64,000 nucleotides of DNA, from the NCBI GenBank assembly GCA_025594325.1, contig JANHCV010000002.1, positions 1 to 64,000 of the forward strand, in the 5' to 3' direction. The notes under the pieces are model-generated. The model worked only from the letters and a program-made list of their open reading frames with translations. It searched no databases and had not been told where the DNA came from. Numbering within the stretch: position 1 is the stretch's first letter; every line of letters starts with the position of its first letter. The position numbers and the translations under genes were made by a program. This stretch comes from Blastocladiella emersonii ATCC 22665. Lineage: Eukaryota > Fungi > Blastocladiomycota. Shown here piece by piece: positions 1 through 22,837 of this stretch.

Positions 1-95
1 AAACCTAAACCTAAACCTAAACCTAACCTAAACCTAAACCTAAACCTAAACCTAAACCTAAACCTAAACCTAAACCTAAACCTAAACCTAAACCT
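1..95 (-). repeat. Telomeric repeat tract (TTTAGG)n; C-rich strand AAACCT on +
   Basis: 15 perfect AAACCT hexamers plus one AACCT pentamer (25-29) at the very start of the window, C-rich strand facing the end as expected for a left telomere. Confidence 0.93.
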
Positions 96-134
96 GGGAG
101 GCAGTTGTGCATCGTCGCCCGTCTCCCCGAGGCA

Positions 135-166
135 GCGCGAAAAGCGCGTCTCGAAACGCGTCTCGC
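135..166. promoter_or_regulatory. E2F/SCB-like (GCGCGAAA) and MCB-like (ACGCGT) motif cluster, present in each array unit
   Basis: GCGCGAAAA 135-143 (reverse complement contains TTTCGCGC), GCGCGTCTCG 144-153, ACGCGTCTCGC 156-166. Function is inferred only. Confidence 0.35.
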
Positions 167-1251
167 AGCGGTCAGGCGATTGTCACCTGATGCCCGAGCT
201 TTTTCGCTTGCTCGCGCGGCGATCGCGACCGCTCACTCATCCCCAAAGTTGAGACTTCACCAAACCCGCAATGACATCTCATGGAATATATGACCCGCTG
301 CAACATGCATCTGTGCCTCGAATGGATGCGATCCTGGCGTCTGGAACGCAGACTCGGACCGCCGCCCTGCTCGCCGCGGAGGCAACTCGACTCCTCTGTC
401 TAGACTTGATCCAGCAGCAGCAGCTGCGTTTGAGGGTTTTGGGTGATCCGTCTTGCTGCATTGCGCCCCTACGCTGCTACCGCTGCCCTCAAGTGAAGGG
501 TATGATCGAAAAATCGTGTGCTGGCGGCCCCCGCCGCCAGCACCCACCCCCACCCTCAACCTTTGACCGGCGCGGCGCGGCGCGGCGCTCTCTCGTCGTC
601 TTGTCGTCTCGATGAACTCGCCTCCCTTCTCGCTCGCTCGCTCGCGCGCGTGTGCTTGTCGTCTGGTTTCCGCGCGCCCGCGCAGGTCCCACCCGCCCCA
701 CCTGCGCTGCTCGCGCCGCTGCTCCTGGCCACCGTGAGAGCCGCCTTCGCTCGCTGCCTCGCTGTGGGATCTCGCTGCGCAGCGAGCAAGGTACTCGGAC
801 CTGCCGCCAAACTCGAGAAGGTGCTCAAACTGGACGGGCGAGTGGTCGGCGCGGCGGCGGGCGTGGCCGACCCGGCCCACGAGCAAGCAACACGGTGGGT
901 TGGGCGACTTGATGGTGTTCGTCCAGCTTGTCGTTGTTGACCTCGCGTCGCGCTCCCTCCGCTCTGCTCTGCTCTCGATCCCATCCCGAATCCCTGAGCG
1001 GCCGCGCCTGTTCTGGGCGGTGGGGCAGCGGCGGCTCGCTCTCCGACGCGGAACACACCTGCCGCCGCGGTGCATCATCGCCGCCGCCACTCTTGCTACT
1101 TTGGTCTCCTTGCTGTTATCACGCGCGCGCGCGAGCGCGCAGGTCTCACGCTTGCATGTGGAAGCAGCAGCCCCCGCCCGTCGTCGCTACTCGCTACTGC
1201 TGCTGCCTGCCTGCATGCGAGTCTGATGGATGACGACTTTGGGGTCGGCCT

Positions 1252-1279
1252 GCCCGCCCGCCCGCCCGCCCGCCCGCCC
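1252..1279 (-). repeat. (GGGC)7 microsatellite, G-quadruplex-capable, in each unit
   Basis: Seven GCCC copies on +, giving G3N1 runs on the - strand. Confidence 0.8.
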
Positions 1280-1698
1280 GCCGCTCACCGCCTCGCACCT
1301 GCCTGCACGCGCGCCGTGCTGAGCACGCGTTCAACTCAGCAGGGTGCTCCGGACCCACGCTTAGCTTCAGATCGGCTCCCTCACGCCTTCCCTACTCTGT
1401 CCTGTTCCTTGCCTGCTTGACGAGCCACTGCTGCTCACCTTGCGTGCAATGAGACACAGCTGGGCAATATCGCACTCCATCTTGTGGGCAGCATTGAGCG
1501 CTCAAAGTTTGCTTGCTTCCCCTCTACAGCGCTGCTCAAAGGTGCTGCTTGCGTGCACGTTACTCTTTGCTACAGACTCCATAACGCCGCCTGCTGGACG
1601 GATCAACGGTGGTGATTGAGCTTTGACGTGTCGGCAGGCAAGGTGGAGTCGCGCGCGACCTCGCTGCAGCAAGAGGGTTGCAGCAAGGGACTTTGCGT

Positions 1699-1917
1699 CA
1701 ACGCCCGTTTGGAATCACCCTTTGACCTAGGCGCGCGTTCTCGACAGCAATCTGCAGCTGATAGCTGAACGAACATAGTTGGTCAAGGTGAACATGCTTG
1801 ATCTGGTCTTCTTGGCCTCGTGGGGTCGGTTTGGACACGACTTGATGAGGTTGACAACGCCCGTTTGGAATCACCCTTTGACCTATGCGCGCGTTCTCAG
1901 CGGCATTCTGCAGATGA
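1699..1917. repeat. Internal direct repeat within the unit (about 63 bp, spacing 156 bp)
   Basis: 1699-1761 versus 1855-1917: the first 31 nt are identical (CAACGCCCGTTTGGAATCACCCTTTGACCTA), followed by a few mismatches. Confidence 0.9.
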
Positions 1918-2745
1918 AATAGTCTACTCAAAAGTTGCTGAAGGTGTCCACGTCCAATCTGATTGTTTCGCCCTTGTGCGGTCGACTCAAGCGCGAGACA
2001 CGTTTGCTGCCCATTGCTCCCTTATGTGACTCAAGTCACCCCCAACCTTTGTTATACTTTTTGATAGATCTTTGAAATATCTACAACCTAGCGTCAGGCA
2101 ATAGGCAAGAAGCACGTGTGAATACGGCTGCAGCAGCGTTCAAGTTTGGTCCTTGGTCAGAGTCACCTTGGAGCCGCCACACTTGGCACACTTGGGTTGT
2201 GCAGCGTTTGAGGGCGGCAAACTAGAGCCGTACGCAAGCTAAGCAACTTTGCTAGCCATGACATGCACACGTTCTACGTGAAATTTCTGAGATACGCCCG
2301 CTGGACACAGCTCAAGCTGGCTTCAGGAAGGTTCAGCAAACAGCGACGGCCCACTGTTCTTGATCTGATCCAGCGGCGTAACAGTGGCTCAAAACGCAGG
2401 TACGGTGCACGCCTTCATGTACTTTCGGTAAACGCAACTTTCTTCCTTGTATGGTGCAAAAGGGAGGGAGCAGCCGCTTGGGGCTGGGAGCTGCTGTGTT
2501 CACCGTGCTCACTGCCACTGAGCCGGATCTGTTCCACCTCTATCCCGTGGATTTGCCACGATTGCGGGTTGAGTCTAAGATGACCACCTGGCCACGGGAT
2601 CTTACGCTAGGCGCCCAATCATGATACGTGTGTGTCTGCCGCAGGACATGCACCGTACGCGGCCCAAGCCTCAACTGCTCCACTGGAGTAGCGAACCATC
2701 GCAGCCAGAGCAACTCTGGCTCCTTTACAATACTATGACGCGGAC

Positions 2746-2828
2746 TGGACGAGATGCGACAGGGACTCGAACCCTGCTCGCCAGCCCGGAACTAGAGAGA
2801 CCTGACTGCTTTGGCTCACTACTCCCCG
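2746..2828 (-). ncRNA. tRNA-like / Pol III B-box element (degenerate, not a canonical tRNA); 6 copies in the array
   Basis: Minus strand has T-arm CAGGG-TTCGAGT-CCCTG (2776-2760). 5' CGGGGAG can pair 6/7 with 3' CATCTCG, which is followed by T-CCA, and TA sits at positions 8-9. The anticodon arm does not fold. Confidence 0.4.
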
Positions 2829-5800
2829 ACGATACATAAAACAACTTTGCCCAAGTGCCTTCTGGCCCCCGCTCTCGTGTGCGTACTCCGCAATGTGAAC
2901 GTGATGCACCCACTGCGCGACACGGCAAGGGCTCAATCAAGCGTGTGGTGTTGGGAGGCAGTTGTGCATCGTCGCCCGTCTCCCCGAGGCAGCGCGAAAA
3001 GCGCGTCTCGAAACGCGTCTCGCAGCGGTCAGGCGATTGTCACCTGATGCCCGAGCTTTTTCGCTTGCTCGCGCGGCGATCGCGACCGCTCACTCATCCC
3101 CAAAGTTGAGACTTCACCAAACCCGCAATGACATCTCATGGAATATATGACCCGCTGCAACATGCATCTGTGCCTCGAATGGATGCGATCCTGGCGTCTG
3201 GAACGCAGACTCGGACCGCCGCCCTGCTCGCCGCGGAGGCAACTCGACTCCTCTGTCTAGACTTGATCCAGCAGCAGCAGCTGCGTTTGAGGGTTTTGGG
3301 TGATCCGTCTTGCTGCATTGCGCCCCTACGCTGCTACCGCTGCCCTCAAGTGAAGGGTATGATCGAAAAATCGTGTGCTGGCGGCCCCCGCCGCCAGCAC
3401 CCACCCCCACCCTCAACCTTTGACCGGCGCGGCGCGGCGCGGCGCTCTCTCGTCGTCTTGTCGTCTCGATGAACTCGCCTCCCTTCTCGCTCGCTCGCTC
3501 GCGCGCGTGTGCTTGTCGTCTGGTTTCCGCGCGCCCGCGCAGGTCCCACCCGCCCCACCTGCGCTGCTCGCGCCGCTGCTCCTGGCCACCGTGAGAGCCG
3601 CCTTCGCTCGCTGCCTCGCTGTGGGATCTCGCTGCGCAGCGAGCAAGGTACTCGGACCTGCCGCCAAACTCGAGAAGGTGCTCAAACTGGACGGGCGAGT
3701 GGTCGGCGCGGCGGCGGGCGTGGCCGACCCGGCCCACGAGCAAGCAACACGGTGGGTTGGGCGACTTGATGGTGTTCGTCCAGCTTGTCGTTGTTGACCT
3801 CGCGTCGCGCTCCCTCCGCTCTGCTCTGCTCTCGATCCCATCCCGAATCCCTGAGCGGCCGCGCCTGTTCTGGGCGGTGGGGCAGCGGCGGCTCGCTCTC
3901 CGACGCGGAACACACCTGCCGCCGCGGTGCATCATCGCCGCCGCCACTCTTGCTACTTTGGTCTCCTTGCTGTTATCACGCGCGCGCGCGAGCGCGCAGG
4001 TCTCACGCTTGCATGTGGAAGCAGCAGCCCCCGCCCGTCGTCGCTACTCGCTACTGCTGCTGCCTGCCTGCATGCGAGTCTGATGGATGACGACTTTGGG
4101 GTCGGCCTGCCCGCCCGCCCGCCCGCCCGCCCGCCCGCCGCTCACCGCCTCGCACCTGCCTGCACGCGCGCCGTGCTGAGCACGCGTTCAACTCAGCAGG
4201 GTGCTCCGGACCCACGCTTAGCTTCAGATCGGCTCCCTCACGCCTTCCCTACTCTGTCCTGTTCCTTGCCTGCTTGACGAGCCACTGCTGCTCACCTTGC
4301 GTGCAATGAGACACAGCTGGGCAATATCGCACTCCATCTTGTGGGCAGCATTGAGCGCTCAAAGTTTGCTTGCTTCCCCTCTACAGCGCTGCTCAAAGGT
4401 GCTGCTTGCGTGCACGTTACTCTTTGCTACAGACTCCATAACGCCGCCTGCTGGACGGATCAACGGTGGTGATTGAGCTTTGACGTGTCGGCAGGCAAGG
4501 TGGAGTCGCGCGCGACCTCGCTGCAGCAAGAGGGTTGCAGCAAGGGACTTTGCGTCAACGCCCGTTTGGAATCACCCTTTGACCTAGGCGCGCGTTCTCG
4601 ACAGCAATCTGCAGCTGATAGCTGAACGAACATAGTTGGTCAAGGTGAACATGCTTGATCTGGTCTTCTTGGCCTCGTGGGGTCGGTTTGGACACGACTT
4701 GATGAGGTTGACAACGCCCGTTTGGAATCACCCTTTGACCTATGCGCGCGTTCTCAGCGGCATTCTGCAGATGAAATAGTCTACTCAAAAGTTGCTGAAG
4801 GTGTCCACGTCCAATCTGATTGTTTCGCCCTTGTGCGGTCGACTCAAGCGCGAGACACGTTTGCTGCCCATTGCTCCCTTATGTGACTCAAGTCACCCCC
4901 AACCTTTGTTATACTTTTTGATAGATCTTTGAAATATCTACAACCTAGCGTCAGGCAATAGGCAAGAAGCACGTGTGAATACGGCTGCAGCAGCGTTCAA
5001 GTTTGGTCCTTGGTCAGAGTCACCTTGGAGCCGCCACACTTGGCACACTTGGGTTGTGCAGCGTTTGAGGGCGGCAAACTAGAGCCGTACGCAAGCTAAG
5101 CAACTTTGCTAGCCATGACATGCACACGTTCTACGTGAAATTTCTGAGATACGCCCGCTGGACACAGCTCAAGCTGGCTTCAGGAAGGTTCAGCAAACAG
5201 CGACGGCCCACTGTTCTTGATCTGATCCAGCGGCGTAACAGTGGCTCAAAACGCAGGTACGGTGCACGCCTTCATGTACTTTCGGTAAACGCAACTTTCT
5301 TCCTTGTATGGTGCAAAAGGGAGGGAGCAGCCGCTTGGGGCTGGGAGCTGCTGTGTTCACCGTGCTCACTGCCACTGAGCCGGATCTGTTCCACCTCTAT
5401 CCCGTGGATTTGCCACGATTGCGGGTTGAGTCTAAGATGACCACCTGGCCACGGGATCTTACGCTAGGCGCCCAATCATGATACGTGTGTGTCTGCCGCA
5501 GGACATGCACCGTACGCGGCCCAAGCCTCAACTGCTCCACTGGAGTAGCGAACCATCGCAGCCAGAGCAACTCTGGCTCCTTTACAATACTATGACGCGG
5601 ACTGGACGAGATGCGACAGGGACTCGAACCCTGCTCGCCAGCCCGGAACTAGAGAGACCTGACTGCTTTGGCTCACTACTCCCCGACGATACATAAAACA
5701 ACTTTGCCCAAGTGCCTTCTGGCCCCCGCTCTCGTGTGCGTACTCCGCAATGTGAACGTGATGCACCCACTGCGCGACACGGCAAGGGCTCAATCAAGCG

Positions 5801-8800
5801 TGTGGTGTTGGGAGGCAGTTGTGCATCGTCGCCCGTCTCCCCGAGGCAGCGCGAAAAGCGCGTCTCGAAACGCGTCTCGCAGCGGTCAGGCGATTGTCAC
5901 CTGATGCCCGAGCTTTTTCGCTTGCTCGCGCGGCGATCGCGACCGCTCACTCATCCCCAAAGTTGAGACTTCACCAAACCCGCAATGACATCTCATGGAA
6001 TATATGACCCGCTGCAACATGCATCTGTGCCTCGAATGGATGCGATCCTGGCGTCTGGAACGCAGACTCGGACCGCCGCCCTGCTCGCCGCGGAGGCAAC
6101 TCGACTCCTCTGTCTAGACTTGATCCAGCAGCAGCAGCTGCGTTTGAGGGTTTTGGGTGATCCGTCTTGCTGCATTGCGCCCCTACGCTGCTACCGCTGC
6201 CCTCAAGTGAAGGGTATGATCGAAAAATCGTGTGCTGGCGGCCCCCGCCGCCAGCACCCACCCCCACCCTCAACCTTTGACCGGCGCGGCGCGGCGCGGC
6301 GCTCTCTCGTCGTCTTGTCGTCTCGATGAACTCGCCTCCCTTCTCGCTCGCTCGCTCGCGCGCGTGTGCTTGTCGTCTGGTTTCCGCGCGCCCGCGCAGG
6401 TCCCACCCGCCCCACCTGCGCTGCTCGCGCCGCTGCTCCTGGCCACCGTGAGAGCCGCCTTCGCTCGCTGCCTCGCTGTGGGATCTCGCTGCGCAGCGAG
6501 CAAGGTACTCGGACCTGCCGCCAAACTCGAGAAGGTGCTCAAACTGGACGGGCGAGTGGTCGGCGCGGCGGCGGGCGTGGCCGACCCGGCCCACGAGCAA
6601 GCAACACGGTGGGTTGGGCGACTTGATGGTGTTCGTCCAGCTTGTCGTTGTTGACCTCGCGTCGCGCTCCCTCCGCTCTGCTCTGCTCTCGATCCCATCC
6701 CGAATCCCTGAGCGGCCGCGCCTGTTCTGGGCGGTGGGGCAGCGGCGGCTCGCTCTCCGACGCGGAACACACCTGCCGCCGCGGTGCATCATCGCCGCCG
6801 CCACTCTTGCTACTTTGGTCTCCTTGCTGTTATCACGCGCGCGCGCGAGCGCGCAGGTCTCACGCTTGCATGTGGAAGCAGCAGCCCCCGCCCGTCGTCG
6901 CTACTCGCTACTGCTGCTGCCTGCCTGCATGCGAGTCTGATGGATGACGACTTTGGGGTCGGCCTGCCCGCCCGCCCGCCCGCCCGCCCGCCCGCCGCTC
7001 ACCGCCTCGCACCTGCCTGCACGCGCGCCGTGCTGAGCACGCGTTCAACTCAGCAGGGTGCTCCGGACCCACGCTTAGCTTCAGATCGGCTCCCTCACGC
7101 CTTCCCTACTCTGTCCTGTTCCTTGCCTGCTTGACGAGCCACTGCTGCTCACCTTGCGTGCAATGAGACACAGCTGGGCAATATCGCACTCCATCTTGTG
7201 GGCAGCATTGAGCGCTCAAAGTTTGCTTGCTTCCCCTCTACAGCGCTGCTCAAAGGTGCTGCTTGCGTGCACGTTACTCTTTGCTACAGACTCCATAACG
7301 CCGCCTGCTGGACGGATCAACGGTGGTGATTGAGCTTTGACGTGTCGGCAGGCAAGGTGGAGTCGCGCGCGACCTCGCTGCAGCAAGAGGGTTGCAGCAA
7401 GGGACTTTGCGTCAACGCCCGTTTGGAATCACCCTTTGACCTAGGCGCGCGTTCTCGACAGCAATCTGCAGCTGATAGCTGAACGAACATAGTTGGTCAA
7501 GGTGAACATGCTTGATCTGGTCTTCTTGGCCTCGTGGGGTCGGTTTGGACACGACTTGATGAGGTTGACAACGCCCGTTTGGAATCACCCTTTGACCTAT
7601 GCGCGCGTTCTCAGCGGCATTCTGCAGATGAAATAGTCTACTCAAAAGTTGCTGAAGGTGTCCACGTCCAATCTGATTGTTTCGCCCTTGTGCGGTCGAC
7701 TCAAGCGCGAGACACGTTTGCTGCCCATTGCTCCCTTATGTGACTCAAGTCACCCCCAACCTTTGTTATACTTTTTGATAGATCTTTGAAATATCTACAA
7801 CCTAGCGTCAGGCAATAGGCAAGAAGCACGTGTGAATACGGCTGCAGCAGCGTTCAAGTTTGGTCCTTGGTCAGAGTCACCTTGGAGCCGCCACACTTGG
7901 CACACTTGGGTTGTGCAGCGTTTGAGGGCGGCAAACTAGAGCCGTACGCAAGCTAAGCAACTTTGCTAGCCATGACATGCACACGTTCTACGTGAAATTT
8001 CTGAGATACGCCCGCTGGACACAGCTCAAGCTGGCTTCAGGAAGGTTCAGCAAACAGCGACGGCCCACTGTTCTTGATCTGATCCAGCGGCGTAACAGTG
8101 GCTCAAAACGCAGGTACGGTGCACGCCTTCATGTACTTTCGGTAAACGCAACTTTCTTCCTTGTATGGTGCAAAAGGGAGGGAGCAGCCGCTTGGGGCTG
8201 GGAGCTGCTGTGTTCACCGTGCTCACTGCCACTGAGCCGGATCTGTTCCACCTCTATCCCGTGGATTTGCCACGATTGCGGGTTGAGTCTAAGATGACCA
8301 CCTGGCCACGGGATCTTACGCTAGGCGCCCAATCATGATACGTGTGTGTCTGCCGCAGGACATGCACCGTACGCGGCCCAAGCCTCAACTGCTCCACTGG
8401 AGTAGCGAACCATCGCAGCCAGAGCAACTCTGGCTCCTTTACAATACTATGACGCGGACTGGACGAGATGCGACAGGGACTCGAACCCTGCTCGCCAGCC
8501 CGGAACTAGAGAGACCTGACTGCTTTGGCTCACTACTCCCCGACGATACATAAAACAACTTTGCCCAAGTGCCTTCTGGCCCCCGCTCTCGTGTGCGTAC
8601 TCCGCAATGTGAACGTGATGCACCCACTGCGCGACACGGCAAGGGCTCAATCAAGCGTGTGGTGTTGGGAGGCAGTTGTGCATCGTCGCCCGTCTCCCCG
8701 AGGCAGCGCGAAAAGCGCGTCTCGAAACGCGTCTCGCAGCGGTCAGGCGATTGTCACCTGATGCCCGAGCTTTTTCGCTTGCTCGCGCGGCGATCGCGAC

Positions 8801-11800
8801 CGCTCACTCATCCCCAAAGTTGAGACTTCACCAAACCCGCAATGACATCTCATGGAATATATGACCCGCTGCAACATGCATCTGTGCCTCGAATGGATGC
8901 GATCCTGGCGTCTGGAACGCAGACTCGGACCGCCGCCCTGCTCGCCGCGGAGGCAACTCGACTCCTCTGTCTAGACTTGATCCAGCAGCAGCAGCTGCGT
9001 TTGAGGGTTTTGGGTGATCCGTCTTGCTGCATTGCGCCCCTACGCTGCTACCGCTGCCCTCAAGTGAAGGGTATGATCGAAAAATCGTGTGCTGGCGGCC
9101 CCCGCCGCCAGCACCCACCCCCACCCTCAACCTTTGACCGGCGCGGCGCGGCGCGGCGCTCTCTCGTCGTCTTGTCGTCTCGATGAACTCGCCTCCCTTC
9201 TCGCTCGCTCGCTCGCGCGCGTGTGCTTGTCGTCTGGTTTCCGCGCGCCCGCGCAGGTCCCACCCGCCCCACCTGCGCTGCTCGCGCCGCTGCTCCTGGC
9301 CACCGTGAGAGCCGCCTTCGCTCGCTGCCTCGCTGTGGGATCTCGCTGCGCAGCGAGCAAGGTACTCGGACCTGCCGCCAAACTCGAGAAGGTGCTCAAA
9401 CTGGACGGGCGAGTGGTCGGCGCGGCGGCGGGCGTGGCCGACCCGGCCCACGAGCAAGCAACACGGTGGGTTGGGCGACTTGATGGTGTTCGTCCAGCTT
9501 GTCGTTGTTGACCTCGCGTCGCGCTCCCTCCGCTCTGCTCTGCTCTCGATCCCATCCCGAATCCCTGAGCGGCCGCGCCTGTTCTGGGCGGTGGGGCAGC
9601 GGCGGCTCGCTCTCCGACGCGGAACACACCTGCCGCCGCGGTGCATCATCGCCGCCGCCACTCTTGCTACTTTGGTCTCCTTGCTGTTATCACGCGCGCG
9701 CGCGAGCGCGCAGGTCTCACGCTTGCATGTGGAAGCAGCAGCCCCCGCCCGTCGTCGCTACTCGCTACTGCTGCTGCCTGCCTGCATGCGAGTCTGATGG
9801 ATGACGACTTTGGGGTCGGCCTGCCCGCCCGCCCGCCCGCCCGCCCGCCCGCCGCTCACCGCCTCGCACCTGCCTGCACGCGCGCCGTGCTGAGCACGCG
9901 TTCAACTCAGCAGGGTGCTCCGGACCCACGCTTAGCTTCAGATCGGCTCCCTCACGCCTTCCCTACTCTGTCCTGTTCCTTGCCTGCTTGACGAGCCACT
10001 GCTGCTCACCTTGCGTGCAATGAGACACAGCTGGGCAATATCGCACTCCATCTTGTGGGCAGCATTGAGCGCTCAAAGTTTGCTTGCTTCCCCTCTACAG
10101 CGCTGCTCAAAGGTGCTGCTTGCGTGCACGTTACTCTTTGCTACAGACTCCATAACGCCGCCTGCTGGACGGATCAACGGTGGTGATTGAGCTTTGACGT
10201 GTCGGCAGGCAAGGTGGAGTCGCGCGCGACCTCGCTGCAGCAAGAGGGTTGCAGCAAGGGACTTTGCGTCAACGCCCGTTTGGAATCACCCTTTGACCTA
10301 GGCGCGCGTTCTCGACAGCAATCTGCAGCTGATAGCTGAACGAACATAGTTGGTCAAGGTGAACATGCTTGATCTGGTCTTCTTGGCCTCGTGGGGTCGG
10401 TTTGGACACGACTTGATGAGGTTGACAACGCCCGTTTGGAATCACCCTTTGACCTATGCGCGCGTTCTCAGCGGCATTCTGCAGATGAAATAGTCTACTC
10501 AAAAGTTGCTGAAGGTGTCCACGTCCAATCTGATTGTTTCGCCCTTGTGCGGTCGACTCAAGCGCGAGACACGTTTGCTGCCCATTGCTCCCTTATGTGA
10601 CTCAAGTCACCCCCAACCTTTGTTATACTTTTTGATAGATCTTTGAAATATCTACAACCTAGCGTCAGGCAATAGGCAAGAAGCACGTGTGAATACGGCT
10701 GCAGCAGCGTTCAAGTTTGGTCCTTGGTCAGAGTCACCTTGGAGCCGCCACACTTGGCACACTTGGGTTGTGCAGCGTTTGAGGGCGGCAAACTAGAGCC
10801 GTACGCAAGCTAAGCAACTTTGCTAGCCATGACATGCACACGTTCTACGTGAAATTTCTGAGATACGCCCGCTGGACACAGCTCAAGCTGGCTTCAGGAA
10901 GGTTCAGCAAACAGCGACGGCCCACTGTTCTTGATCTGATCCAGCGGCGTAACAGTGGCTCAAAACGCAGGTACGGTGCACGCCTTCATGTACTTTCGGT
11001 AAACGCAACTTTCTTCCTTGTATGGTGCAAAAGGGAGGGAGCAGCCGCTTGGGGCTGGGAGCTGCTGTGTTCACCGTGCTCACTGCCACTGAGCCGGATC
11101 TGTTCCACCTCTATCCCGTGGATTTGCCACGATTGCGGGTTGAGTCTAAGATGACCACCTGGCCACGGGATCTTACGCTAGGCGCCCAATCATGATACGT
11201 GTGTGTCTGCCGCAGGACATGCACCGTACGCGGCCCAAGCCTCAACTGCTCCACTGGAGTAGCGAACCATCGCAGCCAGAGCAACTCTGGCTCCTTTACA
11301 ATACTATGACGCGGACTGGACGAGATGCGACAGGGACTCGAACCCTGCTCGCCAGCCCGGAACTAGAGAGACCTGACTGCTTTGGCTCACTACTCCCCGA
11401 CGATACATAAAACAACTTTGCCCAAGTGCCTTCTGGCCCCCGCTCTCGTGTGCGTACTCCGCAATGTGAACGTGATGCACCCACTGCGCGACACGGCAAG
11501 GGCTCAATCAAGCGTGTGGTGTTGGGAGGCAGTTGTGCATCGTCGCCCGTCTCCCCGAGGCAGCGCGAAAAGCGCGTCTCGAAACGCGTCTCGCAGCGGT
11601 CAGGCGATTGTCACCTGATGCCCGAGCTTTTTCGCTTGCTCGCGCGGCGATCGCGACCGCTCACTCATCCCCAAAGTTGAGACTTCACCAAACCCGCAAT
11701 GACATCTCATGGAATATATGACCCGCTGCAACATGCATCTGTGCCTCGAATGGATGCGATCCTGGCGTCTGGAACGCAGACTCGGACCGCCGCCCTGCTC

Positions 11801-14800
11801 GCCGCGGAGGCAACTCGACTCCTCTGTCTAGACTTGATCCAGCAGCAGCAGCTGCGTTTGAGGGTTTTGGGTGATCCGTCTTGCTGCATTGCGCCCCTAC
11901 GCTGCTACCGCTGCCCTCAAGTGAAGGGTATGATCGAAAAATCGTGTGCTGGCGGCCCCCGCCGCCAGCACCCACCCCCACCCTCAACCTTTGACCGGCG
12001 CGGCGCGGCGCGGCGCTCTCTCGTCGTCTTGTCGTCTCGATGAACTCGCCTCCCTTCTCGCTCGCTCGCTCGCGCGCGTGTGCTTGTCGTCTGGTTTCCG
12101 CGCGCCCGCGCAGGTCCCACCCGCCCCACCTGCGCTGCTCGCGCCGCTGCTCCTGGCCACCGTGAGAGCCGCCTTCGCTCGCTGCCTCGCTGTGGGATCT
12201 CGCTGCGCAGCGAGCAAGGTACTCGGACCTGCCGCCAAACTCGAGAAGGTGCTCAAACTGGACGGGCGAGTGGTCGGCGCGGCGGCGGGCGTGGCCGACC
12301 CGGCCCACGAGCAAGCAACACGGTGGGTTGGGCGACTTGATGGTGTTCGTCCAGCTTGTCGTTGTTGACCTCGCGTCGCGCTCCCTCCGCTCTGCTCTGC
12401 TCTCGATCCCATCCCGAATCCCTGAGCGGCCGCGCCTGTTCTGGGCGGTGGGGCAGCGGCGGCTCGCTCTCCGACGCGGAACACACCTGCCGCCGCGGTG
12501 CATCATCGCCGCCGCCACTCTTGCTACTTTGGTCTCCTTGCTGTTATCACGCGCGCGCGCGAGCGCGCAGGTCTCACGCTTGCATGTGGAAGCAGCAGCC
12601 CCCGCCCGTCGTCGCTACTCGCTACTGCTGCTGCCTGCCTGCATGCGAGTCTGATGGATGACGACTTTGGGGTCGGCCTGCCCGCCCGCCCGCCCGCCCG
12701 CCCGCCCGCCGCTCACCGCCTCGCACCTGCCTGCACGCGCGCCGTGCTGAGCACGCGTTCAACTCAGCAGGGTGCTCCGGACCCACGCTTAGCTTCAGAT
12801 CGGCTCCCTCACGCCTTCCCTACTCTGTCCTGTTCCTTGCCTGCTTGACGAGCCACTGCTGCTCACCTTGCGTGCAATGAGACACAGCTGGGCAATATCG
12901 CACTCCATCTTGTGGGCAGCATTGAGCGCTCAAAGTTTGCTTGCTTCCCCTCTACAGCGCTGCTCAAAGGTGCTGCTTGCGTGCACGTTACTCTTTGCTA
13001 CAGACTCCATAACGCCGCCTGCTGGACGGATCAACGGTGGTGATTGAGCTTTGACGTGTCGGCAGGCAAGGTGGAGTCGCGCGCGACCTCGCTGCAGCAA
13101 GAGGGTTGCAGCAAGGGACTTTGCGTCAACGCCCGTTTGGAATCACCCTTTGACCTAGGCGCGCGTTCTCGACAGCAATCTGCAGCTGATAGCTGAACGA
13201 ACATAGTTGGTCAAGGTGAACATGCTTGATCTGGTCTTCTTGGCCTCGTGGGGTCGGTTTGGACACGACTTGATGAGGTTGACAACGCCCGTTTGGAATC
13301 ACCCTTTGACCTATGCGCGCGTTCTCAGCGGCATTCTGCAGATGAAATAGTCTACTCAAAAGTTGCTGAAGGTGTCCACGTCCAATCTGATTGTTTCGCC
13401 CTTGTGCGGTCGACTCAAGCGCGAGACACGTTTGCTGCCCATTGCTCCCTTATGTGACTCAAGTCACCCCCAACCTTTGTTATACTTTTTGATAGATCTT
13501 TGAAATATCTACAACCTAGCGTCAGGCAATAGGCAAGAAGCACGTGTGAATACGGCTGCAGCAGCGTTCAAGTTTGGTCCTTGGTCAGAGTCACCTTGGA
13601 GCCGCCACACTTGGCACACTTGGGTTGTGCAGCGTTTGAGGGCGGCAAACTAGAGCCGTACGCAAGCTAAGCAACTTTGCTAGCCATGACATGCACACGT
13701 TCTACGTGAAATTTCTGAGATACGCCCGCTGGACACAGCTCAAGCTGGCTTCAGGAAGGTTCAGCAAACAGCGACGGCCCACTGTTCTTGATCTGATCCA
13801 GCGGCGTAACAGTGGCTCAAAACGCAGGTACGGTGCACGCCTTCATGTACTTTCGGTAAACGCAACTTTCTTCCTTGTATGGTGCAAAAGGGAGGGAGCA
13901 GCCGCTTGGGGCTGGGAGCTGCTGTGTTCACCGTGCTCACTGCCACTGAGCCGGATCTGTTCCACCTCTATCCCGTGGATTTGCCACGATTGCGGGTTGA
14001 GTCTAAGATGACCACCTGGCCACGGGATCTTACGCTAGGCGCCCAATCATGATACGTGTGTGTCTGCCGCAGGACATGCACCGTACGCGGCCCAAGCCTC
14101 AACTGCTCCACTGGAGTAGCGAACCATCGCAGCCAGAGCAACTCTGGCTCCTTTACAATACTATGACGCGGACTGGACGAGATGCGACAGGGACTCGAAC
14201 CCTGCTCGCCAGCCCGGAACTAGAGAGACCTGACTGCTTTGGCTCACTACTCCCCGACGATACATAAAACAACTTTGCCCAAGTGCCTTCTGGCCCCCGC
14301 TCTCGTGTGCGTACTCCGCAATGTGAACGTGATGCACCCACTGCGCGACACGGCAAGGGCTCAATCAAGCGTGTGGTGTTGGGAGGCAGTTGTGCATCGT
14401 CGCCCGTCTCCCCGAGGCAGCGCGAAAAGCGCGTCTCGAAACGCGTCTCGCAGCGGTCAGGCGATTGTCACCTGATGCCCGAGCTTTTTCGCTTGCTCGC
14501 GCGGCGATCGCGACCGCTCACTCATCCCCAAAGTTGAGACTTCACCAAACCCGCAATGACATCTCATGGAATATATGACCCGCTGCAACATGCATCTGTG
14601 CCTCGAATGGATGCGATCCTGGCGTCTGGAACGCAGACTCGGACCGCCGCCCTGCTCGCCGCGGAGGCAACTCGACTCCTCTGTCTAGACTTGATCCAGC
14701 AGCAGCAGCTGCGTTTGAGGGTTTTGGGTGATCCGTCTTGCTGCATTGCGCCCCTACGCTGCTACCGCTGCCCTCAAGTGAAGGGTATGATCGAAAAATC

Positions 14801-17800
14801 GTGTGCTGGCGGCCCCCGCCGCCAGCACCCACCCCCACCCTCAACCTTTGACCGGCGCGGCGCGGCGCGGCGCTCTCTCGTCGTCTTGTCGTCTCGATGA
14901 ACTCGCCTCCCTTCTCGCTCGCTCGCTCGCGCGCGTGTGCTTGTCGTCTGGTTTCCGCGCGCCCGCGCAGGTCCCACCCGCCCCACCTGCGCTGCTCGCG
15001 CCGCTGCTCCTGGCCACCGTGAGAGCCGCCTTCGCTCGCTGCCTCGCTGTGGGATCTCGCTGCGCAGCGAGCAAGGTACTCGGACCTGCCGCCAAACTCG
15101 AGAAGGTGCTCAAACTGGACGGGCGAGTGGTCGGCGCGGCGGCGGGCGTGGCCGACCCGGCCCACGAGCAAGCAACACGGTGGGTTGGGCGACTTGATGG
15201 TGTTCGTCCAGCTTGTCGTTGTTGACCTCGCGTCGCGCTCCCTCCGCTCTGCTCTGCTCTCGATCCCATCCCGAATCCCTGAGCGGCCGCGCCTGTTCTG
15301 GGCGGTGGGGCAGCGGCGGCTCGCTCTCCGACGCGGAACACACCTGCCGCCGCGGTGCATCATCGCCGCCGCCACTCTTGCTACTTTGGTCTCCTTGCTG
15401 TTATCACGCGCGCGCGCGAGCGCGCAGGTCTCACGCTTGCATGTGGAAGCAGCAGCCCCCGCCCGTCGTCGCTACTCGCTACTGCTGCTGCCTGCCTGCA
15501 TGCGAGTCTGATGGATGACGACTTTGGGGTCGGCCTGCCCGCCCGCCCGCCCGCCCGCCCGCCCGCCGCTCACCGCCTCGCACCTGCCTGCACGCGCGCC
15601 GTGCTGAGCACGCGTTCAACTCAGCAGGGTGCTCCGGACCCACGCTTAGCTTCAGATCGGCTCCCTCACGCCTTCCCTACTCTGTCCTGTTCCTTGCCTG
15701 CTTGACGAGCCACTGCTGCTCACCTTGCGTGCAATGAGACACAGCTGGGCAATATCGCACTCCATCTTGTGGGCAGCATTGAGCGCTCAAAGTTTGCTTG
15801 CTTCCCCTCTACAGCGCTGCTCAAAGGTGCTGCTTGCGTGCACGTTACTCTTTGCTACAGACTCCATAACGCCGCCTGCTGGACGGATCAACGGTGGTGA
15901 TTGAGCTTTGACGTGTCGGCAGGCAAGGTGGAGTCGCGCGCGACCTCGCTGCAGCAAGAGGGTTGCAGCAAGGGACTTTGCGTCAACGCCCGTTTGGAAT
16001 CACCCTTTGACCTAGGCGCGCGTTCTCGACAGCAATCTGCAGCTGATAGCTGAACGAACATAGTTGGTCAAGGTGAACATGCTTGATCTGGTCTTCTTGG
16101 CCTCGTGGGGTCGGTTTGGACACGACTTGATGAGGTTGACAACGCCCGTTTGGAATCACCCTTTGACCTATGCGCGCGTTCTCAGCGGCATTCTGCAGAT
16201 GAAATAGTCTACTCAAAAGTTGCTGAAGGTGTCCACGTCCAATCTGATTGTTTCGCCCTTGTGCGGTCGACTCAAGCGCGAGACACGTTTGCTGCCCATT
16301 GCTCCCTTATGTGACTCAAGTCACCCCCAACCTTTGTTATACTTTTTGATAGATCTTTGAAATATCTACAACCTAGCGTCAGGCAATAGGCAAGAAGCAC
16401 GTGTGAATACGGCTGCAGCAGCGTTCAAGTTTGGTCCTTGGTCAGAGTCACCTTGGAGCCGCCACACTTGGCACACTTGGGTTGTGCAGCGTTTGAGGGC
16501 GGCAAACTAGAGCCGTACGCAAGCTAAGCAACTTTGCTAGCCATGACATGCACACGTTCTACGTGAAATTTCTGAGATACGCCCGCTGGACACAGCTCAA
16601 GCTGGCTTCAGGAAGGTTCAGCAAACAGCGACGGCCCACTGTTCTTGATCTGATCCAGCGGCGTAACAGTGGCTCAAAACGCAGGTACGGTGCACGCCTT
16701 CATGTACTTTCGGTAAACGCAACTTTCTTCCTTGTATGGTGCAAAAGGGAGGGAGCAGCCGCTTGGGGCTGGGAGCTGCTGTGTTCACCGTGCTCACTGC
16801 CACTGAGCCGGATCTGTTCCACCTCTATCCCGTGGATTTGCCACGATTGCGGGTTGAGTCTAAGATGACCACCTGGCCACGGGATCTTACGCTAGGCGCC
16901 CAATCATGATACGTGTGTGTCTGCCGCAGGACATGCACCGTACGCGGCCCAAGCCTCAACTGCTCCACTGGAGTAGCGAACCATCGCAGCCAGAGCAACT
17001 CTGGCTCCTTTACAATACTATGACGCGGACTGGACGAGATGCGACAGGGACTCGAACCCTGCTCGCCAGCCCGGAACTAGAGAGACCTGACTGCTTTGGC
17101 TCACTACTCCCCGACGATACATAAAACAACTTTGCCCAAGTGCCTTCTGGCCCCCGCTCTCGTGTGCGTACTCCGCAATGTGAACGTGATGCACCCACTG
17201 CGCGACACGGCAAGGGCTCAATCAAGCGTGTGGTGTTGGGAGGCAGTTGTGCATCGTCGCCCGTCTCCCCGAGGCAGCGCGAAAAGCGCGTCTCGAAACG
17301 CGTCTCGCAGCGGTCAGGCGATTGTCACCTGATGCCCGAGCTTTTTCGCTTGCTCGCGCGGCGATCGCGACCGCTCACTCATCCCCAAAGTTGAGACTTC
17401 ACCAAACCCGCAATGACATCTCATGGAATATATGACCCGCTGCAACATGCATCTGTGCCTCGAATGGATGCGATCCTGGCGTCTGGAACGCAGACTCGGA
17501 CCGCCGCCCTGCTCGCCGCGGAGGCAACTCGACTCCTCTGTCTAGACTTGATCCAGCAGCAGCAGCTGCGTTTGAGGGTTTTGGGTGATCCGTCTTGCTG
17601 CATTGCGCCCCTACGCTGCTACCGCTGCCCTCAAGTGAAGGGTATGATCGAAAAATCGTGTGCTGGCGGCCCCCGCCGCCAGCACCCACCCCCACCCTCA
17701 ACCTTTGACCGGCGCGGCGCGGCGCGGCGCTCTCTCGTCGTCTTGTCGTCTCGATGAACTCGCCTCCCTTCTCGCTCGCTCGCTCGCGCGCGTGTGCTTG

Positions 17801-18781
17801 TCGTCTGGTTTCCGCGCGCCCGCGCAGGTCCCACCCGCCCCACCTGCGCTGCTCGCGCCGCTGCTCCTGGCCACCGTGAGAGCCGCCTTCGCTCGCTGCC
17901 TCGCTGTGGGATCTCGCTGCGCAGCGAGCAAGGTACTCGGACCTGCCGCCAAACTCGAGAAGGTGCTCAAACTGGACGGGCGAGTGGTCGGCGCGGCGGC
18001 GGGCGTGGCCGACCCGGCCCACGAGCAAGCAACACGGTGGGTTGGGCGACTTGATGGTGTTCGTCCAGCTTGTCGTTGTTGACCTCGCGTCGCGCTCCCT
18101 CCGCTCTGCTCTGCTCTCGATCCCATCCCGAATCCCTGAGCGGCCGCGCCTGTTCTGGGCGGTGGGGCAGCGGCGGCTCGCTCTCCGACGCGGAACACAC
18201 CTGCCGCCGCGGTGCATCATCGCCGCCGCCACTCTTGCTACTTTGGTCTCCTTGCTGTTATCACGCGCGCGCGCGAGCGCGCAGGTCTCACGCTTGCATG
18301 TGGAAGCAGCAGCCCCCGCCCGTCGTCGCTACTCGCTACTGCTGCTGCCTGCCTGCATGCGAGTCTGATGGATGACGACTTTGGGGTCGGCCTGCCCGCC
18401 CGCCCGCCCGCCCGCCCGCCCGCCGCTCACCGCCTCGCACCTGCCTGCACGCGCGCCGTGCTGAGCACGCGTTCAACTCAGCAGGGTGCTCCGGACCCAC
18501 GCTTAGCTTCAGATCGGCTCCCTCACGCCTTCCCTACTCTGTCCTGTTCCTTGCCTGCTTGACGAGCCACTGCTGCTCACCTTGCGTGCAATGAGACACA
18601 GCTGGGCAATATCGCACTCCATCTTGTGGGCAGCATTGAGCGCTCAAAGTTTGCTTGCTTCCCCTCTACAGCGCTGCTCAAAGGTGCTGCTTGCGTGCAC
18701 GTTACTCTTTGCTACAGACTCCATAACGCCGCCTGCTGGACGGATCAACGGTGGTGATTGAGCTTTGACGTGTCGGCAGGC

Positions 18782-19700
18782 TGCGGTCGGTGGCACGGCC
18801 TTCCCGCGCGCACGCGACACTCTGTCCGCTGCCGCTGCCGCTGCCCCGCGTGTGCCGGCACCCGCCAGCTGCACACCCGTCGTAAGCCGCCGCCGCCCCT
18901 TGGATCGTTGCCACCCGGAGCAGTGCCAGCAGCAGCACGCTTTGGCTCGGTCGCTCGCGAGCCTGGCGGCGGGCGCCGTGGTTGCTTGATCTCTCGCCTT
19001 CGGCGTTCCGTGCTCCGTCCAGCCTTCTTCACCACGTCCTCCGCCACCGTGTTCCTCGACCGCTTGCTCCTGCTTTGCCGTCCGGCTGAAGCCTCGCTCT
19101 CGCTTTCGCGCTCAGGTGCGCGCGTTCAACCCGTCGCCGTCCCTGCTCAACCTTGCTGAATCCAAACACGCTCTCCTCCACCCGGCGAGCGCGTCGCTGC
19201 CCTCGAGCGCCGCTGCGTGCCGTGGCCTTGGCTCATCCTGGCAGCTGGCCCCGCTTCTACTTTATGCTACCGTCGTCGCGTCAGGCCAGGTCTCTGGAAC
19301 GTGTGCCAGCCACATCGGGAACCCTTTCAGCGCGGCTCGGCGCGAATCTCGCGTACTTGGTGGCGCCCACGCCGCAATGTTTGGTGCCGGCCGTATCGCC
19401 GTCCACCTCGGAACTCGTGTCCTTGCTCTCGCGCGCGCGCGCAACAACGGGTCAACGCCAAACAGCACTGACAGCGCCTCGCCCTCGCGGACCCGCCCGC
19501 TTCTTGGTGGTGATGCCGCGCATGACGTCGGCCGACCGCAGGGCGCGATTCGGGTGGATCTTGTTCTCGTCAACCAGCTCGGCGTTGGTCGGCATGCCGA
19601 ACTTGCGCGCGCGCGCGCCGTCGCGGGGGCGCGGTCGCAGGCGACGACAGGTTGGCCGTACGCCGGACAGGAACATCAAACGAACGCGACGAGCTCGCTC
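18782..19700 (-). pseudogene. Possible decayed/frameshifted gene fragment abutting the array
   Basis: Short codon-biased pieces in different minus frames (e.g. ARKFGMPTNAELVDENKIHPNRALRSADVMRGITTKK; AEDVVKKAGRSTE) with no continuous ORF. Confidence 0.25.
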
Positions 19701-19879
19701 TTGGACGACGAGCGTGCCGACTGTCCCCTAATCGTCGAGACGGTTGGATAAATGAACGTCGTTCCTCATGTCGGTGCCCATCATGTCAAGTGTAAAGAAA
19801 TCTATTGGACGCGAAAGCGATGGGGAAATCACACAAACCCGCTCTCATCGCGAGGCGACAGGCCGACGACCAGCGGCCG

Positions 19880-22837
19880 TCATGGCGCTGCCGCGTCACC
19901 GCGGAGTGTTGCTGTATCGGAGGTGGTGGCGGCGGCGTCGGCCCGCGACGGATCCGCGTTCTCCTCCTCCTGGACTGGCGGCGGCGGTGACGGTGTCGTG
20001 CCCGCGGGCGCGTTTTCGCTGCTGCTGCCGTTGGACGACGTGGCGGACGCGACCGACTTGCTGGACGACCGGCGCCGACTCGTCGGTCCGAGCCCAATGA
20101 CCGAGTCGTCCGCGAGAGCTTCGGACGGTCGGCGCGAGGCGGGTGCGGAGCCGCCCTCGGACGACGACGGCGTGACGGACGACGATTCGGTGGTGGTGGT
20201 GCCCTCCTCCGTGTCGGTCTCGGTCTCGGCGAGGACGCCGACCCAGTAGTCGCGCGTGACGGCAATGTTCTTGAGGTACGCCTCCATGCGCGGGATGGCC
20301 TTGCCCATGGTGCGGAACAGGGGCGCGCACATGTACTCGGAGAAGGACATGCCGAGGCGGGCCGACTGGGGCGCGAGGCGGTCGCCGAACCCGGACACAG
20401 GGAGCCCCTGCTCGCGTTCCACGTCGCCCTGCTGGAACATCTCCTCCTGGATGCAGTCGGACCAGCCCTTGGCGAGGTGCAGCGGGCGGATCACGTTGGA
20501 CACGTCGGCGCACTTGATGAGCATCTCGAGCGACCGGGCGCGGTGCTCGCGGTCCGTGGCGTCGAACGCCGGGCAGATCTCGTTGAACTTGGCCAGGATG
20601 TCAACGTGCTTGGCGAGGTCCGTCGACAGGATCGACCGCACCATGAGCTGGCGGATCTCGGCCTGGACCGTGCGCGTCTGCTGCGCGAGGAGCGCGTGCT
20701 TGGCGATGAGCCGCGACGCCTCGTGCATGTGGCGGTTCTCGAGCGGCGACTGGTCGTTGTAGAGCACGGCGAGGTCCGACTGCGTCACGATGTGGAAGTT
20801 GTTGGTCTTACCGTCGTGCTCGAGGTCGTGGCACACGCACGCGAGCATGAAGGCGAGCTGCTCCTGCAGCGTGAACATGAGGCGCGGGATCTTGCGCGGC
20901 GGCGACGAGGACGCGGCGGGAGCCGAGGTGCTGGCCTGCTGGGCGGCGACCGCGGCGTTGAGGGCGGCGGCCATCGAGTAGCCGATGGACGTGGGCGTGG
21001 GCGGGACGGCGGCGCCGGAGAAGTCGGCGTCAAACTCGTTGGTGCCCGTGGACGGCGGCGTGTAGCTCTCGTCCGACTCGCAGACGCAGCAGGTGCGGAG
21101 GAACAGGTAGCCGGCCTGGGTCACGTCAAAGGCGTGGCGGAAGTTGTGGTACGGGTTGAGCTTGTAGCCGCGCTCGACCGACTTGAGGAACTCGAGGAAT
21201 GTGTCGGGTTCGATGCGGAACGTGTGCAGCAGGCCGAGGTCGGCGAACATGTCGACGAGGAAGACGAGGAGCTCGGCGTGGGTGTAGGACCACACGTCAA
21301 AATTCCACGAGTTGAGCAGCGGCAGGTGGGTCGGCTCGGGCAGGATGGCGGGCAGGACCACGTTGGCGATCGGGTCGGCGTCCGTGTCCTCCATGGCGGC
21401 GGGCAGCAGCGAGGCGATGGACGAGATGGACCCGGACCGCTCCTTTTTCCGGCGGTGGATCTCGGAGATGCGGCGCAGGCGCGGCACGGAGCCGCCGGGC
21501 CCGAGGGCGGGCGACGAGCCAGCGGACGCCGCGGCGCCGGCGCCCGTGGCCGAAGACTGCGACGACATGTTGTCGCGGAGGACCTCAGAGGCGAGCCACG
21601 ACTTGGTCTCGTCGTCCACGTCGTCGCGCGAGAGAACGCGCTCGAAGGCGGGGCGGTAGAGGTTGGAGGTGCGCAGGCCGTCAAGGACGCCGCGCAGGCT
21701 GGCGCGGGCCTCATCGGACATGCCGGCCTCGGACGAGAGGAGGCGGGACACGGCGCGGGTGATGAGGTTGAGCGGGGTCTCAACGGCGGCCGAGACCTGG
21801 TGCTCGAGCGACTCGACCTTGACCTCGAGGGTCTTGCGCTTGGTGCGCTCCTCCTCGAGCAGCTGCAGCACCTTCTTCTCCTTGCGCTTGCGCCAGACGC
21901 TGCGCCAGACGCCCTTGACGGCCTCAGTCTTGACGGGCTTGACGAGGTAGTCGTCGGCGCCCGAGCGCAGGCACGAGTAGGCGAGCTCCATCTCCTCGAG
22001 TGCGGCCATCATGATGACGGGGATGTGGACGAGTTCGACGTCGCTGCGGATGGAGCGCAGGAGGTCGATGCCCTGGACGGTGGCAATGTCGCAAATGACG
22101 AGCGAGTACTCGGCGGCGGCGGGCGGCACGGGCGCATGGGCGGCCAGCGCCGCGGCATCGTGACCCGGCGGCGGCGGGCCCGCCGAAGGAGGTGTTGGTG
22201 GGGGCGGGAGCGGCGAGGACAGGTGCGGCGAGGCGGTGCTCGAGAGGGGCGAGGGCGTCGCGGCAGCCGCGTCCGGGTCGTAGTCGGGTGCCTCGGCGAG
22301 GTGGTGCAGGCCCGAGACGAGGGAGAGGGGCGGGGGCGAGTGGATGTGGGCGAGGGCGACGTGGGCCGAGGTGACGACGTCGACGGGGTAGCCGGCGTTG
22401 CACAGCTGCTGCACGACGAGGCGGGCGTGGCGCGGGTCGGCGTCGACGACGAGGACGCGGATCTCGGCCGGGGTGACGGAGAGCTTGCGCGAGAAGAAGC
22501 GGTGGAACGACGGGTCGGTCGGCGACAGCTCGCTGAACGACTGGGTGCTCCCGCGGCGCGAGGACCCGGCGCCGGCGCGGGCGACGGGCGAGAGGATCGG
22601 GGCGGGCGGCGGAGCACGGGCACCGGCGCCAGCGGCATAGAGGGCCGGGAGGGGCGAGGTGCCGCTACGGCCAGCAGCGGGCGAGGCGCGAGAGCCGGGC
22701 GCACGGGTACCGTCATCGTCCTCGTCCTCATCGGCGGCGCCGTGGGTGGTGGAGATGGAGAGCGACGAGGGCGGCGTCGGGACGAGTCCGTGCGACAGCG
22801 AGCTGCGGCGGATGGCGGCGCGGGCAATCGGCTGCAT
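19880..22837 (-). CDS. Receiver-domain class I cyclic-nucleotide phosphodiesterase (RegA-like)
   Basis: REC motifs IRVLVVD...LVICD...IPVIMM...GADDYLVKP. PDEase motifs YHNFRHAFDV, HDLEHDG, LYNDQSPLEN, TDL, CADVSN. First in-frame ATG is at 22837; the frame is open further upstream, so the start is uncertain. Confidence 0.9.
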   Translation of the reverse strand: MQPIARAAIRRSSLSHGLVPTPPSSLSISTTHGAADEDEDDDGTRAPGSRASPAAGRSGTSPLPALYAAGAGARAPPPAPILSPVARAGAGSSRRGSTQSFSELSPTDPSFHRFFSRKLSVTPAEIRVLVVDADPRHARLVVQQLCNAGYPVDVVTSAHVALAHIHSPPPLSLVSGLHHLAEAPDYDPDAAAATPSPLSSTASPHLSSPLPPPPTPPSAGPPPPGHDAAALAAHAPVPPAAAEYSLVICDIATVQGIDLLRSIRSDVELVHIPVIMMAALEEMELAYSCLRSGADDYLVKPVKTEAVKGVWRSVWRKRKEKKVLQLLEEERTKRKTLEVKVESLEHQVSAAVETPLNLITRAVSRLLSSEAGMSDEARASLRGVLDGLRTSNLYRPAFERVLSRDDVDDETKSWLASEVLRDNMSSQSSATGAGAAASAGSSPALGPGGSVPRLRRISEIHRRKKERSGSISSIASLLPAAMEDTDADPIANVVLPAILPEPTHLPLLNSWNFDVWSYTHAELLVFLVDMFADLGLLHTFRIEPDTFLEFLKSVERGYKLNPYHNFRHAFDVTQAGYLFLRTCCVCESDESYTPPSTGTNEFDADFSGAAVPPTPTSIGYSMAAALNAAVAAQQASTSAPAASSSPPRKIPRLMFTLQEQLAFMLACVCHDLEHDGKTNNFHIVTQSDLAVLYNDQSPLENRHMHEASRLIAKHALLAQQTRTVQAEIRQLMVRSILSTDLAKHVDILAKFNEICPAFDATDREHRARSLEMLIKCADVSNVIRPLHLAKGWSDCIQEEMFQQGDVEREQGLPVSGFGDRLAPQSARLGMSFSEYMCAPLFRTMGKAIPRMEAYLKNIAVTRDYWVGVLAETETDTEEGTTTTESSSVTPSSSEGGSAPASRRPSEALADDSVIGLGPTSRRRSSSKSVASATSSNGSSSENAPAGTTPSPPPPVQEEENADPSRADAAATTSDTATLRGDAAAP

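Follow-up and report, generated by a model that had tools for sequence, protein, structure and literature searches.

Is a gene-free array of identical kilobase-sized repeats, lying directly beneath a telomere, a new way of looking after a chromosome end, or is it a satellite of a kind already familiar from other organisms? The question is raised by the first 64,000 nucleotides of a contig of the fungus Blastocladiella emersonii ATCC 22665 (Blastocladiomycota; assembly GCA_025594325.1, contig JANHCV010000002.1, positions 1 to 64,000 of the forward strand). This whole stretch, hereafter the window, is the left end of the contig called C11 below. A preliminary description, made from the letters alone, drew attention to a head-to-tail array of a 2857-bp unit there and suggested that it could be an undescribed system for maintaining or buffering chromosome ends. 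The answer given here is that it is no new way of maintaining chromosome ends and that it is an ordinary kind of chromosome-end satellite. The array probably belongs to a telomerase-capped subtelomeric macrosatellite family, with a unit of 2.74–2.86 kb, whose expansion would be local and proceed through unequal exchange or break-induced replication.

The array and its cap

The features concerned are collected in Table 1, with unit position 1 taken as window position 96. A base-by-base period comparison confirms for the assembly what had been noticed at the outset, six identical full copies and a partial one, without indels: the 2857-bp periodicity breaks first at 18782, and leftward it reaches 1 base into the telomere tract. 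No spacer separates the units, which are direct head-to-tail repeats both here and, with periods of 2740 and 2745 bp, on the two other contigs (C8 and C18) that are described in the next section. Nor do telomere tracts interrupt the array, again as first described, and neither strand of the unit holds AAACCT, AGGTTT, CCCTAA or TTAGGG.

The cap itself is of the regular sort, AAACCT being the telomere motif of B. emersonii as found with tidk (Leonard et al. 2022, PMC9730499). Among the assembled contig ends an (AAACCT)n tract is present at the start of C2 and the start of C11 only, and just 2 of the 42 contig ends reach a telomere. The C2 tract measures 885 bp and is degenerate, variants such as AACCT, ACCT and AAACC being frequent in it; set against it, the 95-bp tract of C11 may be one that assembly has shortened.

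How much weight should be put on the perfection of the array? The published assembly was made from HiFi reads with a mean of 10.5 kb by the La Jolla Assembler, which works on a de Bruijn graph, and was followed by purge_dups, manual removal of duplicate contigs, and Pilon (PMC9730499). In such a graph a perfect repeat that is longer than the reads is a cycle, and so the copies unrolled from it are identical; how many turns there should be is ill determined. The zero variation of the preliminary description is accordingly true of the assembly, but in part it is there by construction. On this repeat the assembly paper is silent: the word ‘satellite’ occurs 0 times in it and ‘repeat’ twice, one of these naming the AAACCT motif (PMC9730499).

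Table 1. Features at the left end of contig C11, in window coordinates
Feature	Position	Strand	Remarks
Telomere tract, C-strand (AAACCT)n	1-95	+	16 copies, one AACCT variant; G-strand is TTTAGG
Head-to-tail array of the 2857-bp unit	96-18781	+	Six full copies plus unit 1-1544; zero mismatches
Full copies	96-2952, 2953-5809, 5810-8666, 8667-11523, 11524-14380, 14381-17237	+	All equal to copy 1
Reference unit (copy 1)	96-2952	+	Telomere joins unit position 1 with 1 nt overlap
(GCCC)n microsatellite	1248-1282	+	Once per unit; in the GC-rich, indel-prone part (about unit 400-1500)
Two 156-bp sub-repeats, 75% alike	1699-1984	+	Once per unit
Invariant block, 311 bp, unit 2460-2770	2555-2865	+	Zero differences among the C11, C8 and C18 unit types
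tRNA T-arm-like hairpin with perfect B-box-type GGTTCGAGTCC	2753-2792	-	Inside the 311-bp block
Innermost partial copy, unit 1-1544, 1544 bp	17238-18781	+	Stops mid-unit against another repeat
Second subtelomeric element	18782-19880, core about 18782-19713	+	Abuts the innermost partial unit
Response-regulator receiver and cyclic-nucleotide phosphodiesterase gene	19880-23032	-	First gene inward from the end

The same family at other ends

Whether the unit sits at other ends of the assembly had been left to be checked, and the right ends of C8 and C18 prove to hold arrays that belong to its family. They came to light by reading the last 4 kb of every contig, aligning the unit and counting short motifs; a whole-unit DNA search of the organism's own genome skips very common words and missed both. 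At each of the two ends the family is reverse-complemented, which at a right end is the same polarity towards the end as on C11, and the contig stops inside the array, with no telomere. The periods are 2740 bp on C8 and 2745 bp on C18, and within each end piece neighbouring copies are 100% identical. Between ends it is otherwise, the units of C8 and C18 being 99.5% identical and that of C11 96.7–97% identical to either, with a 92-bp indel and smaller indels; among the indel sites that tell the C11 type from the C8/C18 type are unit 866, 984, 1034 and 1111. Counted by motif, C11 has 6–7 copies, C8 has 4 and C18 has 6, and their spacing is exactly constant.

Is this then an end element or a repeat scattered at large? 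The three terminal arrays hold 16 of the 19 motif hits, all of one polarity, and the others are one on C20 and two on C6; with so strong a bias to ends, the family has the distribution that was supposed for it and not that of an ordinary dispersed repeat. The interior fragment on C20 (C20:873433-875657, 2.2 kb) runs from unit 1530 to 2857 and then from 1 to 929, unbroken across the unit boundary. The DNA beside it is single copy and shows no relationship to the flank of the C11 array, on which ground a reciprocal exchange between C20 and C11 was set aside. On C6, two unit fragments of about 0.6 kb (C6:725695-726087 and C6:933009-933401; unit 2363 to about 130; 83% identity) sit in two 3.4-kb inverted copies that are 207 kb apart and 91% identical, and in these inverted segments Pfam content was sought and none was found.

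Identity is thus 100% within arrays, a figure that is partly a property of the assembler, against 99.5% and about 97% between them. Of the earlier suggestion of recent amplification or active homogenisation, what stands is that homogenisation is local; what has to be discounted is the perfection, which is partly assembler-made.

How many copies does the DNA hold?

Evidence on this comes from Logan contigs of four public DNA runs (X1–X4), all of one sample, aligned with window positions 15900–21899. The runs are of genomic DNA, their longest records being 8–73 kb and three of the four holding 20–29 Mb of contigs. In X2, where flank depth is 2–7, a unit contig of 283 bp with 0 differences, from a block common to all types, has a depth of 2715, and a unit contig of the C8/C18 type has a depth of 1677. 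A third X2 contig, of 133 bp at 18173–18305 and again with 0 differences, has a depth of 497, and is specific for the C11 type because C8 and C18 carry 3- and 6-bp deletions there; this segment is about as GC-rich as the flank. Corresponding unit depths are 13,800–15,400 in X3 (flank 117–243, for the listed contigs beyond 19500) and 160–530 in X4 (flank about 0–5), and in X1 single-allele depth is 3,400–33,000 (flank 10–50). Expressed as a ratio, unit depth is 60–400 times flank depth in X2–X4 and higher in X1.

The high-depth contigs bear the marks of the known unit types. Each of the 17 best-supported base differences listed either matches an allele of C8/C18 or lies at an indel of theirs, a single one being C18-specific, and the indels in read contigs coincide with those that distinguish the C11 unit from the C8 and C18 units. 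Alleles of the C11 type make up about 45–60% of the depth in X1 and X2.

As an order of magnitude, the family has about 10^2 copies or more, roughly 0.3–1 Mb, versus about 17 copies assembled, and units of the C11 type are roughly ten times commoner than the 6.5 in the assembly. The figure of 6.5 should almost certainly be read as a minimum. Either these identical copies are the smallest unrolling of a near-uniform C11 array that is in fact much longer, or there are further C11-type arrays that were left unassembled. The shortfall arises because contigs stop inside arrays and because of purge_dups.

Could the whole array be an assembly artefact, a low-copy unit wrongly unrolled or telomere reads mis-joined to a repeat? 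The ingredients are there, a de Bruijn-graph assembler given reads shorter than the array and followed by purge_dups and Pilon, and zero variation over 18.7 kb is what an unrolled loop would give. It is nevertheless most improbable that this accounts for what is seen, as there are three arrays with three exactly kept periods and private variants, both unit types are far above single copy in the read contigs, which puts the error on the side of too few copies, and the interior fragments confirm the sequence of the unit-to-unit junction.

A different account of the same depth, in line with the circular template suggested in the preliminary description, is that most copies are extrachromosomal circles, or rolling-circle products, which recombine into ends, the arrays being their integrated form. 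Read-contig depth far above the assembled copy number would suit this, as would the perfect uniformity of the arrays and the unbroken passage across the unit boundary in the interior fragments of C20 and C6; also, the inner edge of the C11 array at unit 1544 and the beginning of the C20 fragment at unit 1530 have 15 nt in common. However, the inner ends of the arrays differ, being at unit 1544 on C11, between 1788 and 2506 on C8, and between 2535 and the next 1476 on C18 (the C8 and C18 junctions are bracketed by motif counts), and with three inner-end positions there is no one place of attachment or termination, so that the single sequence prediction of the rolling-circle idea, a set unit terminus where the arrays stop inwards, fails. 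The DNA flanking the C20 fragment is unique, Rep, helicase, integrase and other recognisable open reading frames (ORFs) are absent from the unit, and any fragment of any tandem array spans an arbitrary unit boundary. Contigs stopping inside arrays, together with purge_dups, explain the depth excess more simply, and circles as the main form of the family are improbable. Two related proposals were tried and dropped: a fixed-terminus, att-like or Helitron-like model built on the 15-nt overlap, since the C8 and C18 inner ends are at other unit positions, and the idea that the high depth stems from the spacer of the ribosomal DNA (rDNA), since the rDNA of C17 has no unit motif and only relatives of the 156-bp sub-repeat.

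What is in the unit?

The unit is non-coding. Its ORFs are only of the Arg/Ala-rich kind that is usual in GC-rich DNA, and for seven of them Pfam gave no match at E<=0.1; the ORFs around the C20 and C6 unit fragments also had no Pfam match. No Rfam family reaches its gathering score in the unit, ARAGORN finds no transfer RNA (tRNA) there, and there is no ribosomal RNA (rRNA) gene anywhere in the window, so that in its account of a unit without coding content or rRNA the preliminary description is borne out by Pfam, Rfam and ARAGORN alike.

A unit can of course be non-coding and still have structure. The (GCCC)n site is the only G-quadruplex-type run in it, on the G-strand. The 156-bp sub-repeat has distant relatives (72–74%), located within the spacer of the C17 rDNA and at a single interior site of C18. 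It was considered as a dispersed transposon and rejected as such, its 28-nt core, with up to 3 mismatches allowed (<=3), occurring inside the family only.

What stands out is the 311-bp block, for which about 10 substitutions are expected among the unit types and 0 are seen (P about 4e-5); the C20 fragment has only 3 differences within it. On folding, its minus strand has z = -3.1, better than all 100 shuffles, and its plus strand z = -1.7. Around the T-arm-like hairpin 37 nt are fully kept in the C6 fragments, which in the alignment are otherwise 83% identical, and the region has a weak Rfam match to a tRNA-like family (E=0.68). A tRNA gene in the unit was rejected, ARAGORN being negative and the Rfam match below gathering score. 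To judge from the letters, the T-arm-like block may be what is left of a tRNA-derived element, or a tract kept alike by conversion, or else a site at which RNA polymerase III (Pol III) or TFIIIC functions.

Suppose that the last of these applied, and that each copy carried, within a constrained 311-bp block, a B-box or tRNA-like element serving as a small RNA gene or a TFIIIC-bound boundary. The invariance of unit 2460–2770, the GGTTCGAGTCC hairpin with its 37 nt kept on C6, and the minus-strand folding score would then all find an explanation. We regard such a functional module as unlikely: ARAGORN is negative, the Rfam E-value is only 0.68, an acceptor stem cannot be drawn, there is no covariation to appeal to since the block is invariant, and gene conversion between arrays could also hold the block identical. 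A bolder scheme, offered as a speculation that would have to beat long odds, would have hundreds of units at a few ends, each with a constrained 311-bp module, a Pol III B-box or tRNA-like hairpin included, that would give rise to a small RNA, or would bind TFIIIC as a boundary or tether, in arrays of 100 kb or more per end that would be kept uniform through frequent intra-array recombination, possibly by way of circular intermediates.

Comparison with known systems

To what, then, is the family to be likened? In Chlamydomonas reinhardtii, a green alga, the Sultan elements form non-coding, telomere-adjacent tandem arrays whose copies resemble one another more closely inside an array than across arrays (Chaux-Jukic et al. 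2021, PMC8287924). The Blastocladiella family is like them in having a non-coding unit that is repeated head-to-tail without spacer beside the telomere and hardly occurs in chromosome interiors, in having copies more alike within an end than between ends, in being followed inward by a shared element (Spacer there, the 18782–19713 element here), and in that other ends carry other subtelomere classes, rDNA included. There are differences too. The unit of about 850 bp there compares with 2.74–2.86 kb here, three-fold longer; every Sultan unit has a telomere-like seed and the Blastocladiella unit has none; and Sultan arrays are carried by 27 of 34 ends, against 3 of about 14 recognisable ends here. 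The likeness is one of architecture; a relationship in sequence is not expected.

The Y' elements of Saccharomyces cerevisiae are kilobase-sized subtelomeric units with a helicase ORF, with telomere tracts between copies, and amplified by recombination. They too stand in short tandem arrays, with the telomere on one side and a core element common to ends on the other, and the Blastocladiella unit differs in its lack of a helicase ORF and of telomere tracts between units. In human 4q and 10q the D4Z4 repeat has a unit of about 3 kb, long variable arrays, array-specific variants and the DUX4 ORF. Unit size and subtelomeric arrays on few ends are common ground with it; the difference is that no ORF was found in the unit here. 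Subtelomeric rDNA, as in Chlamydomonas class D and others, shares the feature of a tandem array that is directly telomere-capped and differs in that the Blastocladiella unit has no rRNA gene and the C17 rDNA has no unit motif. Two further candidates were discarded: a telomeric retrotransposon array of the HeT-A/TART or MoTeR kind, there being no RT or Gag ORF and the full copies being identical and not 5′-truncated, and a Helitron or rolling-circle array, there being no Rep or helicase ORF and the three arrays having their inner ends at three unit positions. In the literature searched there is no description of subtelomeric satellites in Blastocladiomycota.

Origin and role

How would a telomerase-capped macrosatellite of this kind come about? 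At each end one or a few founder units would have multiplied in place, through unequal exchange between sister chromatids and/or through break-induced replication that used the sister, and this would keep copies within an array alike, a reasoning published for the Sultan arrays (PMC8287924). Rare exchange or duplication between ends would spread the family, the arrays drifting apart afterwards, and the distal edge on C11 would be a break within a unit that was healed by telomerase. As to role, the array would be filler without genes, or a buffer, that sets the telomere apart from the first gene; it is probably heterochromatic and would take no part in end maintenance. In base composition the unit is set off from its surroundings, with 60% G+C versus 69% in the flank and the rest of the window, and a CpG observed/expected ratio of 1.02 versus 1.27 in the flank; the lower ratio is only a hint at a heterochromatic array.

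Might the arrays rather be a telomerase-independent device, of the type of alternative lengthening of telomeres (ALT) or of type I survivors, that replaces or backs up the telomere repeats? Amplified, telomere-adjacent and homogenised, they do resemble Y' in yeast type I survivors. Yet a regular telomere tract caps the array, there are no tracts between units, and the genome has a gene for a telomerase RBD (C18:1092687-1093123, with a score that passes the Pfam cut-off). Moreover the C2 end has 885 bp of telomere repeats and no unit, six ends are of the C2 type and four of another. That the family does the work of a telomere is therefore very unlikely indeed. The suggestion of an undescribed maintenance or buffering system is not supported, on much the same ground, namely the ordinary cap, the telomerase RBD gene and the unit-free C2 end, and also because at least 10 further putative ends use other subtelomere types and because arrays of this architecture are already described, in the form of Sultan (PMC8287924).

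Several points tell against a locally expanding, telomerase-capped macrosatellite and are best faced together. The perfect identity within arrays is partly the assembler's doing. The k-mer depth of contigs cannot be equated with a copy number; it is raised by summed contigs and by GC bias, and the four runs share one sample. For C11 the assembled length of the array is almost certainly no more than a minimum. A telomere is seen on one array only, the end position of the C8 and C18 arrays being deduced from contig termini and polarity. The invariant 311-bp block with its B-box-like hairpin hints that the unit is not wholly inert.

The flank and other kinds of end

Inward of the array on C11 lies the second subtelomeric element. 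It has at least 9 further copies (74–94% identity) on C18, C21, C2, C5, C19 and C17, all of them within about 65 kb of a contig end, for which the chance probability is about 2e-10, and with a polarity towards the end that is constant except in one member of an inverted pair. Its segment 18844–19186 shows paralogous variants and raised depth in the read contigs. The element contains no Pfam family; a 75-aa ORF on its minus strand (19452–19679) has a faint Tho1/MOS11 C-terminal-like motif (E=0.08). Three flank ORFs have no Pfam match at E<=0.1.

The first gene inward has a history of its own. Its 3′ 1646 bp (19881–21526) are duplicated, at 97% identity, at C18:2001727-2003372, beside the C18 array, and homology then breaks off; from this the C18 copy looks like a truncated paralogue that came from a subtelomeric segmental duplication. 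What the left end of C11 and the right end of C18 share is hence a block of array, 1.1-kb element (88%) and 1646 bp of the phosphodiesterase gene (97%).

An all-against-all comparison of contig ends sorts these ends into families. Six ends share, with consistent polarity, the type of sequence at the start of C2, i.e., that under the other assembled telomere, and at the C2 end there is no unit within 4 kb of the telomere. As C2 has a telomere without the unit, an end does not require the 2.8-kb satellite, which is one among several types of subtelomere. Four ends (those of C4, C15 and C16, and the start of C20) share a third block and stop at the same base. Twelve ends, the right end of C11 among them, share another family in mixed orientation, which is possibly centromeric; with such shared and possibly centromeric ends, many of the contigs resemble arms of chromosomes. 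C17 begins with an rDNA array of unusually long period, 17,364 bp, whose transcription runs towards the start of the contig.

Some of the smaller contigs are of unusual structure. C12 (58.8 kb) and C13 (32.2 kb) are palindromic, their ends being 100% inverted copies of their starts, and C14 (20.4 kb) has 1197 bp at its start that recur, in direct orientation, at its end, so that it is possibly circular or tandem. These structures may be assembly artefacts or real palindromes.

What it means for blastoclad chromosome ends

These findings account for the small number of contig ends, 2 of 42, at which a telomere is reached; the reference lacks roughly 0.3–1 Mb or more of satellite. B. emersonii, a blastoclad, is an early-diverging flagellated fungus that serves as an optogenetic model. 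What emerges is a first outline of the architecture of chromosome ends in a blastoclad, with at least four kinds of end, the 2.8-kb satellite, the C2-type block, the third shared block and rDNA, and with a 0.9-kb element that is common to several of them.

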